From Pseudomonas aeruginosa PAO1 (lineage in GTDB: Bacteria > Pseudomonadota > Gammaproteobacteria > Pseudomonadales > Pseudomonadaceae): 64,000 nucleotides of DNA. The notes under the pieces were generated by a model that was not told the DNA's origin, ran no database searches, and saw only the letters and a list, made by a program, of their open reading frames with translations. This document shows, piece by piece, positions 58,844-62,219 of this stretch. Position 1 is the first letter of the stretch, and each line of letters opens with the position of its first letter. Where the stretch lies: assembly GCF_000006765.1 (NCBI RefSeq), contig NC_002516.2. The stretch is one strand, 5' to 3'. Position numbers and translations under genes: made by a program.

Positions 58844-59737
58844 ATGGAATTCCGTCAACTCCGCAGCTTCGTCGAAGTGGTCCGCCAGGGCAGCTTCACC
58901 CAGGCGGCTCAGGTCCGCCACGCCAGCCAGTCGACCATCAGCAAGCAGGTCGCCCAACTGGAGCAGAGCCTTGGCGTGCAGGTATTGGAACGCAACGGGC
59001 CGCACGTGCGCCTGACCGACGCCGGCGCCGTGGTGTTTCGCCGCGCCGAGGAGATGCTGCGGCTGCGCCGCGACCTGCTCAGCGAATTGGACGACCTCAG
59101 CCAGCTCAACCGCGGCGAACTGCGCCTGGGCCTGCCGTTGCTCGGTGCCGACGCGCTGTTCGCCCAACGCTTCGCCGAATACCGGCGGCGCTATCCGAAC
59201 ATCGCCGTGCACCTGGTGGAGGGCGGCAGCAAGACCATGGAGCAGGCGGTGCTGGCCGGCGAGCTGGAATTGGCCGGCAGCCTCACCCCGGCGGACGACG
59301 GCTTCGACTACCAGCCGTTCTGCAACGAACCGCTGGACGTGCTGCTGCCGGCCGGGCATCCCAAGGCCGCTGCCGCCAGCGTCGCCCTCGGCGAACTGGC
59401 GGACAGCCCGTTCCTGCTCTACCAGCAGAGCTTCACCCTCAACGACCGCCTGCTGCGCGCCTGCCTGGAGGCCGGCTTCAGCCCGCGCGAAGGCGGCCGC
59501 AGCGGCCAGGCCGACTTCCTCGGCGCGCTGGTGGCGGCCAACCAGGGAGTGGTGCTGCTACCACGGGTGATCGCTCGCGAGATCGAACGCCCGGGAGTGG
59601 TGCGGGTCCTGCTCAGGGAGCCGGACCTGCGCTGGGACATCGCCTTCATCTGGCGCCGTGGCGGCTACCTGTCGCGGGCGGCGCAGGCCTGGCTGGAGCT
59701 GCTGCGCGAGCAGCCGCTGGAGGAAAGCCCGGCGTAG
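58844..59737 (+). CDS. LysR-family regulator (CidR-like)
   Basis: 297 aa LysR HTH, divergent from cidA/lrgB pair. Confidence 0.9.
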   Translation: MEFRQLRSFVEVVRQGSFTQAAQVRHASQSTISKQVAQLEQSLGVQVLERNGPHVRLTDAGAVVFRRAEEMLRLRRDLLSELDDLSQLNRGELRLGLPLLGADALFAQRFAEYRRRYPNIAVHLVEGGSKTMEQAVLAGELELAGSLTPADDGFDYQPFCNEPLDVLLPAGHPKAAAASVALGELADSPFLLYQQSFTLNDRLLRACLEAGFSPREGGRSGQADFLGALVAANQGVVLLPRVIAREIERPGVVRVLLREPDLRWDIAFIWRRGGYLSRAAQAWLELLREQPLEESPA

Positions 59738-59998
59738 GACGAATAACCGCCAGCTCGGCAGAGGCTACGGCGGATAACGCCTGGGGGCGTTATTCGCCCT
59801 ACCGCTTGCTCCCTCCCCGTGTAGGGCGAATAACCGCTACGCGGTTATCCGCCACCTCGGCAGGCGTTTCGGCGGATAACGCCTGGGGCGTTATTCGCCC
59901 TACCGCTTGCTCCCTCCCCGTGTAGGGCGAATAACCGCTACGCGGTTATCCGCCACCTCGGCAGGCGTTTCGGCGGATAACGCCTGGGGCGTTATTCG
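59734..59998. repeat. REP-doublet array, left part
   Basis: Degenerate REP at 59734, units at 59769 (102 bp) and 59871 (101 bp), and the first 27 bp of unit 3 from 59972. Each unit holds two inverted GTAG-type REPs. Confidence 0.95.
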
Positions 59999-60001
59999 TA
60001 T

Positions 60002-60014
60002 ATGGACTCCTCCC
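60002..60014. repeat. IS subterminal inverted repeat (right end, 3 bp from end)
   Basis: ATGGACTCCTCCC, exact reverse complement of 61351-61363. Confidence 0.95.
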
Positions 60015-60049
60015 GGTTTGCCAGTGTTTGTCTTGATTTCAAACCTGTG

Positions 60050-60210
60050 TACGACTGCATCCGTATATCCGGCTTCATGGAGTGGTGTTGCAACTCCCGA
60101 GCCCTGATGAAATGCGCGCCTGCATACCTGATCGCCCTAACGGCTTTGCTTCACTGCAGCAGGGAGCCCACGTATAAACCAGGTTTCATGCAGGCCGGTT
60201 CGACCGGTTC
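60050..60210 (-). ncRNA. Putative bridge/seek RNA of the IS (target- and donor-binding loops)
   Basis: Manual folding gives two stem/internal-loop/hairpin modules whose loops match the REP target and the circle junction; transcript ends unknown. Confidence 0.8.
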
Positions 60211-60273
60211 GTCATCATTGTCATTCACTGAGCAATCGTGGTGGATGTTTCAACTACGGTGTGGCAGGAACGC

Positions 60274-61290
60274 TCAACCGGGCCGGTAGCATGTCTCCCG
60301 GCTGAGTAAAGCCCAAAGGATCCGGGCATTCTTGTTGGCCAGGGCAACGGCGACGACATTGGCAGGACGCCGTTGCAGCAGACCTTGCAGCCAGCGGCTG
60401 CGGGCATCGGTCTTGTTGGCGCAACAGCGCACGACTGCACGGGCGCCATGGATGAGCAAGGTCCGCAAGTAGGTATCGCCGCGCTTGCTGATGTTGCCCA
60501 AGCGCTGCTGCCCGCCCGTGGAGTGCTGCCGTGGCACCAGGCCCAGCCAGGCCGCAAACTGGCGGCCCGTGCGGAATTGCCGTGCATCACCGGCGGATGC
60601 CGCCACCGCGCTGGCGCTGATCGGGCCGATGCCTTCCACCGCCAGCAGGCGCTGGATGCGGGCATCGCCACGTACGTGAGCCTGAATCTGTCGCTCCAGT
60701 CGAGCGATGCGCGCCTCCAGCGTCTGCAATTCATCTTTCAATTCACGCAACAGCTCGCCCATCGGGGCCGGCAAGGGCGCCGGCTCGGTAGCCATGACCG
60801 TTTCGAGCAAGGCCATCGTCGCCGCTCGCCCACGTCGAGTCGCGATCAGCCCGAACTCACCCAGCAAGCCACGCACCTCATTGCACAACGCCGTGCGGGC
60901 CCGCACTAGACGACTGCGCACCCGATGCATCGACTGCACGGCCTGCTGCTCTGCGCTCTTCACCGGGACATAGCGCATGCTCGGACGACTGGCGGCTTCG
61001 CAGATCGCCTCGGCGTCGTGTGCATCGTGCTTGTCACCCTTGACGTAGGGTTTTACGAACTGCGGTGCGATCAGGCGTACCGTGTGGCCCAGCTCCCGCA
61101 ACTCGCGCGCCCAGTAGTGCGCACTGCCGCAGGCCTCCATCGCCACCAGGCACGGCGGCAGTTGGCGAAAGAAATCCCGCACCTGTGCCCGCTTGAGTTG
61201 GCGACGACATACCACATGCTCGTGACGATCAACGCCGTGCACCTGGAATACTTGTTTTGCCAGATCCAGACCAATGCGACTAAGGTTCAT
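60274..61290 (-). CDS. IS110-family DEDD transposase/recombinase
   Basis: ATG 61290 after GGGGGAG (338 aa); RuvC-like GLDLAK, MEACG, KHDAHDAEAI; HhH VEGIGPISA; GLVPRQHSTGG with conserved Ser; intact frame. Confidence 0.96.
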   Translation of the reverse strand: MNLSRIGLDLAKQVFQVHGVDRHEHVVCRRQLKRAQVRDFFRQLPPCLVAMEACGSAHYWARELRELGHTVRLIAPQFVKPYVKGDKHDAHDAEAICEAASRPSMRYVPVKSAEQQAVQSMHRVRSRLVRARTALCNEVRGLLGEFGLIATRRGRAATMALLETVMATEPAPLPAPMGELLRELKDELQTLEARIARLERQIQAHVRGDARIQRLLAVEGIGPISASAVAASAGDARQFRTGRQFAAWLGLVPRQHSTGGQQRLGNISKRGDTYLRTLLIHGARAVVRCCANKTDARSRWLQGLLQRRPANVVAVALANKNARILWALLSRETCYRPG

Positions 61291-61350
61291 GCTGACTCCC
61301 CCTCCGGGACTTGTGGCTGCACCATTAGTCTGGCGCTTGACGCCGTAGGA

Positions 61351-61363
61351 GGGAGGAGTCCAT
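61351..61363. repeat. IS subterminal inverted repeat (left end, 7 bp from end)
   Basis: GGGAGGAGTCCAT. Confidence 0.95.
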
Positions 61364-61370
61364 TTCATTG

Positions 61371-61639
61371 CCCTACCGCTTGCTCCCTCCCCGCGCAGGG
61401 CGAATAACCGCCACGCGGTTATCCGCCACCTCGGCAGGCGTTTCGGCGGATAACGCCTGGGGCGTTATTCGCCCTACCGCTTGTCCTCTCCCCGTGTAGG
61501 GCGAATAACCGCTACGCGGTTATCCGCCACCTCGGCAGGCGTTTCGGCGGATAACGCCTGGGGCGTTATTCGCCCTACCGCTTGTCCCCTCCCCGTGTAG
61601 GGCGAATAACCGCCACGCGGTTATCCGCCGCCTCGGCGG
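61371..61639. repeat. REP-doublet array, right part
   Basis: Remaining 74 bp of unit 3, unit 4 at 61445 (101 bp), unit 5 from 61546 (degenerate end). Confidence 0.95.
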
Positions 61640-61652
61640 GGTACGCCCGGGA

Positions 61653-62105
61653 TCAGCCCTTGAGGGCGGCGGCGAACTCGGCCAGCCAAGGCTCGGCGTC
61701 GGTCTCGGGGGTAACGGTTTCGCTGGCATCCAGGCGCAGCATCGGCAGCACTTCACGCACGCCCAGTTCGCCGAACAGTTCGCGAACCTGCTCGCCGCCA
61801 CCGCAGAACGTGTCGCCGTAGCTCGAATCGCCCAGGCCGATGACCCCACCCGGCAGGCCGTGCCAGGCCGGCAGTTGGTCGCGGATCGCGTAGTACAGCG
61901 GTTGCAGGTTGTCCGGCAGTTCGCCCATGCCGGTGGTCGAGGTCACCACCAGGAATGCCTCGGGGGCGAAGGCCTTGAGTTCGTCGAGGCTGGCGCGGGG
62001 CAGATGGGAGGCCTCGAGGCCGGCCGCGGACAGCAATTTCTGGGCGTGCCGGGCGACTTCTTCGGCGGTGCCGTAGACCGAGCCGGAGAGAATGGCGACT
62101 TTCAT
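61653..62105 (-). CDS. Flavodoxin (MioC/YqcA-like)
   Basis: ATG 62105 (150 aa); GSVYGTAE, STTGMGELP, GLGDSSY..FCGG. Confidence 0.9.
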   Translation of the reverse strand: MKVAILSGSVYGTAEEVARHAQKLLSAAGLEASHLPRASLDELKAFAPEAFLVVTSTTGMGELPDNLQPLYYAIRDQLPAWHGLPGGVIGLGDSSYGDTFCGGGEQVRELFGELGVREVLPMLRLDASETVTPETDAEPWLAEFAAALKG

Positions 62106-62219
62106 GAACACTCCGTAAGCCAACAGGGGTAAGCCGGGCATTATGCCGCATGCGTTCGCCGAGCGGGACGCACCGAATCAATGCAGACAGGCTGCAAAAG
62201 CACCATTTCGGTGCGCACC

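Follow-up and report, generated by a model that had tools for sequence, protein, structure and literature searches.

The segment at 60118–60195, read on the minus strand, is very probably the target-binding loop of the seekRNA, or bridge RNA, of the insertion sequence ISPa11. It lies in the 64,000-nucleotide stretch of Pseudomonas aeruginosa PAO1 DNA analysed here (the window), which contains one copy of ISPa11. The original prediction had read this segment as the loop with which an RNA-guided IS1111-type element binds its REP targets, and this was borne out by the identity of the element, by two loop strands that both follow the target and by stems that covary. The guide function of the segment is already known, and the finding rediscovers, independently, a feature of ISPa11 that had been published with experimental support; the prediction had correctly taken the class of system to be published but missed that ISPa11 itself was. 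The transposase of ISPa11 co-purifies with RNAs of 96 nt and 172 nt (Siddiquee, Pong, Hall & Ataide 2024, Nat Commun 15:5235; PMC11187229), and that the RNA exists and is bound by TnpPa11 is taken from that publication. The RNA maps downstream of tnp as a 96-nt peak with a 172-nt long form (PMC11187229 Fig. 3e, Supp. Figs 5b, 6b; PMC13604230). All testable defining features of an IS1111-group element and of a seekRNA or bridge RNA were found, and the coordinates of the parts of the element are given in Table 1.

Table 1. Features of the ISPa11 element and its surroundings, in window coordinates.
Feature	Position	Strand	Remarks
Complete insertion sequence ISPa11	59999–61370	-	1372 bp; boundaries by comparison with uninterrupted REP copies
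Transposase gene tnp	60277–61290	-	338 aa from MNLSRIG; stop codon 60274–60276
Left end	61351–61370	-	7-nt extension CAATGAA (61370–61364) and sub-terminal inverted repeat ATGGACTCCTCCC (61363–61351)
Right end	59999–60014	-	Sub-terminal inverted repeat GGGAGGAGTCCAT (60014–60002) and 3-nt extension ATA (60001–59999)
Left target half GTAGGG (REP arm)	61371–61376	-	Present left flank
Right target half CGAATAAC	59991–59998	-	Present right flank; first C is the single nucleotide in common with the first base of the IS (core)
Probable target-binding loop hairpin	60118–60195	-	Outer stem 60195–60180 / 60130–60118 with GAA bulge, internal loop, inner hairpin 60168–60142
5' loop strand UUAUACG, proposed right-target guide	60171–60177	-	DNA TTATACG (60177–60171)
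3' loop strand UAGGGCGA, proposed left-target guide	60132–60139	-	DNA TAGGGCGA (60139–60132)
Second guide loop (donor-binding loop)	60057–60117	-	Stem/internal-loop/hairpin unit directly 3' of the target loop
Candidate -35 box CTGGCA	60019–60024	-	Read from sequence
Flavodoxin gene	61653–62141	-	
LysR-type regulator gene	58844–59737	+	

The element is, by its sequence, ISPa11, which belongs to the IS1111 group of the IS110 family. The transposase was identical to ISPa11 Tnp at 338 of 338 residues (reference sequence from the source data of PMC11187229), which identifies the element. It matched Pfam DEDD_Tnp_IS110 (PF01548, 1e-16) and Transposase_20 (PF02371, 1e-24), giving the N-terminal DEDD (RuvC-like) domain and C-terminal Transposase_20 domain of the IS110 family, and scored 365.7 bits against the NCBIfam model NF033542 'IS110 family RNA-guided transposase' (cutoff 140). 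The program-made list of open reading frames starts the transposase at ATG 61368, inside the left end (364 aa); the protein start given by ISfinder is 61290 (338 aa), the extra stretch being 61291–61368 on the minus strand. Only about 60 nt lie upstream of tnp and 259 nt of non-coding sequence separate its stop codon from the right inverted repeat, the long downstream non-coding region that marks the IS1111 group. Two plus-strand open reading frames that overlap the RNA region, 60002–60289 (95 aa) and 59907–60107 (66 aa), are most likely spurious.

ISPa11 sits in a REP array between the flavodoxin and LysR-type regulator genes, with REP units of about 100 bp on both sides (59740–59998 and 61371–61650). 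Eight uninterrupted copies of GTAGGGCGAATAAC, four per strand, remain in the same array as unoccupied ISPa11 target sites and give the empty site, so that its reconstruction in the original prediction, from the flanks GCGGTAGGG and CGAATAACGCC, was right. With a slash marking each point of insertion, here and below, the arrangement in the orientation of the transposase is ...GCGGTAGGG / CAATGAA-ATGGACTCCTCCC ... GGGAGGAGTCCAT-ATA / CGAATAACGCC.... The sub-terminal inverted repeats are 13 bp long, in keeping with the IS1111-group rule of 11–13 bp with a 7-bp left and a 3-bp right extension, the placement of repeats and extensions being the published signature of the group (PMC11187229), and the 7-nt extension and repeat were arranged in the same way in 51 relatives. 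Most relatives have the same base, C or T, at the start of the IS and at the start of the right flank, so the common core is one nucleotide. The two bases differ in a few relatives (L017, L025 and L047; for example CAATGG... with flank TGC...), either from insertion at imperfect sites or from later mutation. A megablast search of the IS against a plasmid collection found no copy of ISPa11, the only hit being an 8% match to another IS110-family gene.

Joining the ends in a circle would, as read from the sequence, create a junction promoter facing tnp, made of the CTGGCA box, an 18-nt spacer and a -10 box TA/CAAT formed where 59999–60000 meets 61367–61370. In relatives with a T core the joined ends would give TATAAT instead of TACAAT. 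Junction promoters have been described for IS1111-family elements (PMC11187229).

Insertion was specific for both site and orientation, with no target duplication beyond the common core. One public genome carries six identical 1372-bp copies of ISPa11 (L081–L086, GenBank CP047067.1; positions 499–542 around each IS), one of them at the same flavodoxin/LysR site as in the window. These six insertions and the window site all read GTAGGG/CGNATAAC in the same orientation, and between -6 and +8 the only position that varied among the six copies was +3, which was A four times, C once and G once. A 2026 review table lists the ISPa11 target as GTAGGGCGaATAACCGC with insertion at GG/CG (PMC13604230); this is the same site as in the window, and the lower-case a of the listed target falls at +3. 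A locus in a sister genome (L090, GenBank CP053117.1, 5382277–5384493) has the right flank of L086 and a different left flank, and the first 40 nt of the IS were absent from the place expected, which either a rearrangement between copies of the IS or a difference in assembly might explain.

The letters and coordinates of the loop given in the original prediction all proved correct, including the two loop strands in DNA form (TAGGGCGA at 60139–60132 and TTATACG at 60177–60171), the inner GGCT/AGCC stem and the outer stem with its GAA bulge. On the minus strand the outer stem pairs 60195–60180 with 60130–60118 as 8 bp, the GAA bulge and a further 5 bp, and the inner stem pairs GGCT (60168–60165) with AGCC (60145–60142). 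RNAfold returned the predicted fold as both the minimum free energy and the centroid structure of the hairpin, at -32.7 kcal/mol (z = -2.6 against dinucleotide shuffles, 2 of 200 of which folded as well), and lengthened the lower stem by three weak pairs to leave an 8/8 internal loop. Over the whole 291-nt downstream region folding was no better than in shuffled sequences (z = -0.72), and only the local hairpin stood out. A search of Rfam release 15 at a permissive E-value over 59600–61800 found no family inside the IS even at E <= 1. The sole hits of the search were sub-threshold matches to the P33 'Pseudomonas sRNA' family on the flanking REP array (30–35 bits, gathering score 45), and the model of this family seems to be largely built on REP sequence.

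Around the cut, each strand of the internal loop matches a different strand of the target, as in seekRNAs and bridge RNAs. The 5' strand, UUAUACG, pairs with CGAATAA of the top strand (+1 to +7), with the A at 60173 unpaired opposite +3. The 3' strand, UAGGGCGA, repeats the top-strand letters from -5 to +3, and hence its partner is the bottom strand on both sides of the insertion point. On the RNA, the segment complementary to the top strand (60177–60171) thus stands 5' of the match in top-strand sense (60139–60132), which is the order reported for IS1111-type elements, where the top-strand match lies 5' of the bottom-strand match (Siddiquee et al. 2024, PMC11187229). The original prediction had counted eight nucleotides of identity between the 3' strand and the insertion site. 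Those letters do match, but the true guide match is probably 7 nt, -5 to +2 (UAGGGCG), because the eighth letter, the A at 60132, belongs to a 'GA' that is kept in relatives whatever their target and agrees with +3 of the target in only 6 of 33 relatives; this last A is probably conserved scaffold. The prediction had also placed the single mismatch of the 5' strand where REP arms vary, and this holds at real insertion sites, which have A, C or G at +3; none of these bases pairs with the guide A at 60173, however, so that +3 may go unread by the guide.

The behaviour of the loop strands in relatives with other targets was examined in a scan of one genome per species, which gave 80 loci encoding relatives of 48–80% identity. 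Both ends and both flanks were recovered for 51 of the 80, with about 30 different insertion sequences, and alignment of the downstream regions with MAFFT (alignment A1) revealed a conserved scaffold with variable loop strands. The covariation that the original prediction had put forward as its own check was found on both strands. Scored by alignment column with one representative for each of 30 target classes, the 3' strand agreed with the target of its own element in 137 of 150 cases (positions -5 to -1), where 50 ± 6.5 were expected and 77 was the maximum when the targets were permuted 20,000 times; such permutation does not wholly remove phylogenetic relatedness, though 30 different target classes were used. 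The 5' strand was scored by its longest complementary run, because of 1-nt register shifts in the MAFFT alignment that affected column-anchored scoring, and the mean run complementary to the strand's own right flank was 6.6 nt compared with 3.4 nt for permuted targets (0 of 20,000 as high). Examples of 5' strands are AACGUCUGCU for AG/CAGACGTT, CAAGUUGACA for TGTCAACTTG and CUAGUUGA for TCAACTAG. A naive longest-match test of own against all other targets gave only 6.8 nt versus 5.9 nt, a small contrast because many relatives have common targets.

The stems were maintained in the same set of relatives by compensatory substitutions, which like guide strands that covary with the target are among the defining features of a seekRNA or bridge RNA. 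Both sides had changed in all 7 pairs of the outer stem of the target loop and in 16 of 24 pairs overall. Of the alignment cells in stems 92.8% were paired, against 30–44% with the partners slid, and the stem covariation score was 0.53 compared with at most 0.135 (0 of 500 shuffles as high). RNAalifold missed the inner hairpin of the target loop owing to alignment gaps, and this hairpin was therefore examined separately: its 4-bp stem was complementary in 36 of 37 relatives through 11 different sequences. Single-sequence folds gave the same overall architecture in 37 of 37 relatives. Just 5' of the target-loop hairpin, at 60197–60205 on the minus strand, a motif GGUCGAACC is kept in nearly all relatives and may be a protein-binding element or the 5' stem-loop of the 96-nt RNA.

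The original prediction covered one of two guide loops. The unit directly 3' of the target loop is the donor-binding loop, and the target loop is one half of a two-loop bridge RNA. The 5' strand of the donor loop, CAUUUCAU (60114–60107), is complementary to the left end ATGAAATG, and its 3' strand, AUAUAC(G) (60068–60062; AUAUAC is 60068–60063), equals the right end ATATA followed by the common C. Between them, within 60103–60071, an inner stem GGCU (60103–60100) / AGCC (60074–60071) encloses an apical stem GGAGU/ACUCC. The loop thus matches the joined ends of the IS, as the second loop of a bridge RNA does. In relatives the 5' strand covaried with the 7-nt left extension over 16 donor classes (0 of 20,000 permutations as good), for example CCCAUU for CAATGGG, GUCAU for TAATGACA, AUCAUCU for AGATGAT and ACAUCA for TGATGT, and the 3' strand tracked the right-end variants ATACT, ACACA, ATAGA and ATACA together with the C/T core. 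The stems of the donor loop also covaried. The two-loop unit spans about 140 nt, from 60195 to 60057, which fits the published short species of 96 nt and long species of 172 nt.

In both loops the 3' strand ends in the core followed by G (and A) (60062; 60132–60133; relatives in alignment A1). The G of the donor loop matched +2 of the right flank in 20 of 25 relatives, against 5 of 25 for +2 of the left end (A), and the A of the target loop matched +3 of the left end in 28 of 33 relatives, against 6 of 33 for +3 of the target. At the junction of the integrated right end with its flank the donor-loop G would form a Watson-Crick pair, and at the circle junction only a G-T wobble. These letters could be conserved scaffold, could pair by wobble or could make a handshake-like contact. 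Two details of the guide code, possibly undescribed for ISPa11, would allow a further reading that we consider rather doubtful: the unpaired A at 60173 may be a deliberate 'don't-care' position by which one RNA tolerates several REP variants, and the donor loop may serve both excision and insertion.

Position +2 also bears on the alternative that survives best, in which a short RNA consisting of the target loop is sufficient and the second loop (60057–60117) is dispensable or part of a precursor, the target loop reading both the empty target and the flank–end junctions of the integrated donor. We regard such a one-loop mechanism as unlikely. For ISEc11 a short seekRNA is reported to suffice for transposition, with a role for the long form yet to be established and with a donor that needs the correct target on its flanks (PMC11187229), and the base after the core in the second-loop 3' strand agrees with the right flank rather than the left end, in the proportions given above. 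Both strands of the second loop nevertheless track the ends of the element, over 16 donor classes and several right-end variants, and its stems are kept by compensatory changes, which would not readily be expected of a dispensable precursor tail; donor guides for ISPa11 have moreover been predicted by Durrant et al. (PMC11208160).

That an ordinary hairpin after the gene (a terminator, for instance, or an mRNA-stabilising stem-loop with no guide function) matches the target by chance is very improbable, even though the 8-nt match alone lends it some room. The chance figure of 0.008 in the original prediction is correct for a single pre-chosen 8-mer; as evidence by itself it does not stand, since with all placements P is about 0.06. 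Of 5000 dinucleotide shuffles of the 259-nt non-coding region, 6.2% contained an exact match of at least 8 nt to one or other strand of the 24-bp empty site, and the z-score of the hairpin (-2.6) is modest. The 8-mer alone is therefore weak; the decisive points are where it lies in the loop, the presence of a second guide and the covariation in relatives. The stem is followed by no U-tract, about 30 relatives with unrelated targets carry their own target at the same two loop positions, and the RNA co-purifies with the transposase in published work (PMC11187229), all of which speak against an ordinary hairpin. Capture of a REP fragment by the loop, or misplaced element boundaries, so that the match would reflect common DNA ancestry, is just as improbable: ISPa11 does sit in REP arrays and the letters that match do occur in REP, but one strand matches over 7–8 nt and the other at 6 of 7, REP similarity goes no further, the boundaries follow from the eight empty sites in the array and six other insertions, and relatives that insert into non-REP sequences obey the same rule.

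With the segment taken as the target-binding loop of a two-loop RNA, the mechanism of insertion can be outlined. The RNA would be transcribed from the minus strand with tnp or just after it, and the transposase would bind it. The 3' strand of the internal loop (UAGGGCG) would pair with the bottom strand of the REP arm over -5 to +2, which span the cut, and the 5' strand (UUAUACG) with the top strand from +1 to +7. Both DNA strands would thereby be read around the exchange point GTAGGG/CGAATAAC, which would fix the site and the orientation of insertion. The second loop would likewise read both strands where the ends of the excised circle are joined, and the DEDD/serine recombinase would then exchange strands at the common C. 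By analogy, the chemistry of strand exchange is expected to be that of IS621, in which a recombinase tetramer cleaves the top strands via serine, forms a Holliday junction and resolves it (PMC11208158/PMC11208160).

When compared with the published ISPa11 seekRNA (PMC11187229) by transposase, target and layout, the element in the window was the same in its transposase (100%), REP target, cut at GG/CG, place of the RNA downstream of tnp and order of the matches, and no difference was found. ISPa11 is also among six elements for which Durrant et al. (2024) predicted guides, designated LTG, RTG, LDG and RDG (PMC11208160). The bridge RNA of IS621 (PMC11208160; Hiraizumi et al. 2024, PMC11208158) likewise has a target loop and a donor loop, a REP target and a DEDD plus serine recombinase, and in either loop the left half is read through its bottom strand by one side of the loop and the right half through its top strand by the other side. 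The differences from IS621 lie in the layout. IS621 has its RNA in the left end and upstream of the gene, ISPa11 downstream of tnp; the IS621 loop begins with the left guide and that of ISPa11 with the right guide, a reversal of guide order within the loop that Siddiquee et al. noted for IS1111-type elements (PMC11187229). The sub-terminal repeats of IS621 measure 2–3 bp, compared with 13 bp and extensions of 7 nt and 3 nt in ISPa11, and its core is the dinucleotide CT, compared with one nucleotide in ISPa11, C (T in many relatives).

Within the IS1111 group the seekRNAs of ISEc11, ISKpn4 and ISPst6 (PMC11187229) have the same family layout and two-match rule. Their targets differ, being a linear site or integron attC sites, and their transposases head groups separate from ISPa11 in the tree of PMC11187229, by which they are set apart here. 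Retargeting by guide changes is reported there for ISEc11 and ISEc21, not for ISPa11. ISPpu9 and ISPpu10 of Pseudomonas putida (PMC12288879; Ramos-Gonzalez et al. 2006) are also IS110-family elements in REP sequences with a small RNA gene (Ssr9) downstream of the transposase gene; they are different elements in a different, species-specific REP.

RNAs of this kind would not show in an annotation based on open reading frames, and no family of Rfam release 15 matched the one described here. The value for annotation is that simple rules locate both guide loops and predict the targets of uncharacterised IS1111-type elements: a hairpin about 80 nt after tnp, a 3' strand equal to the target from -5 to +2, and a 5' strand complementary to the target from +1 to about +8. 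The rule holds over 30 target classes in a clade that spans Pseudomonas, methanotrophs, Acidobacteria and others.
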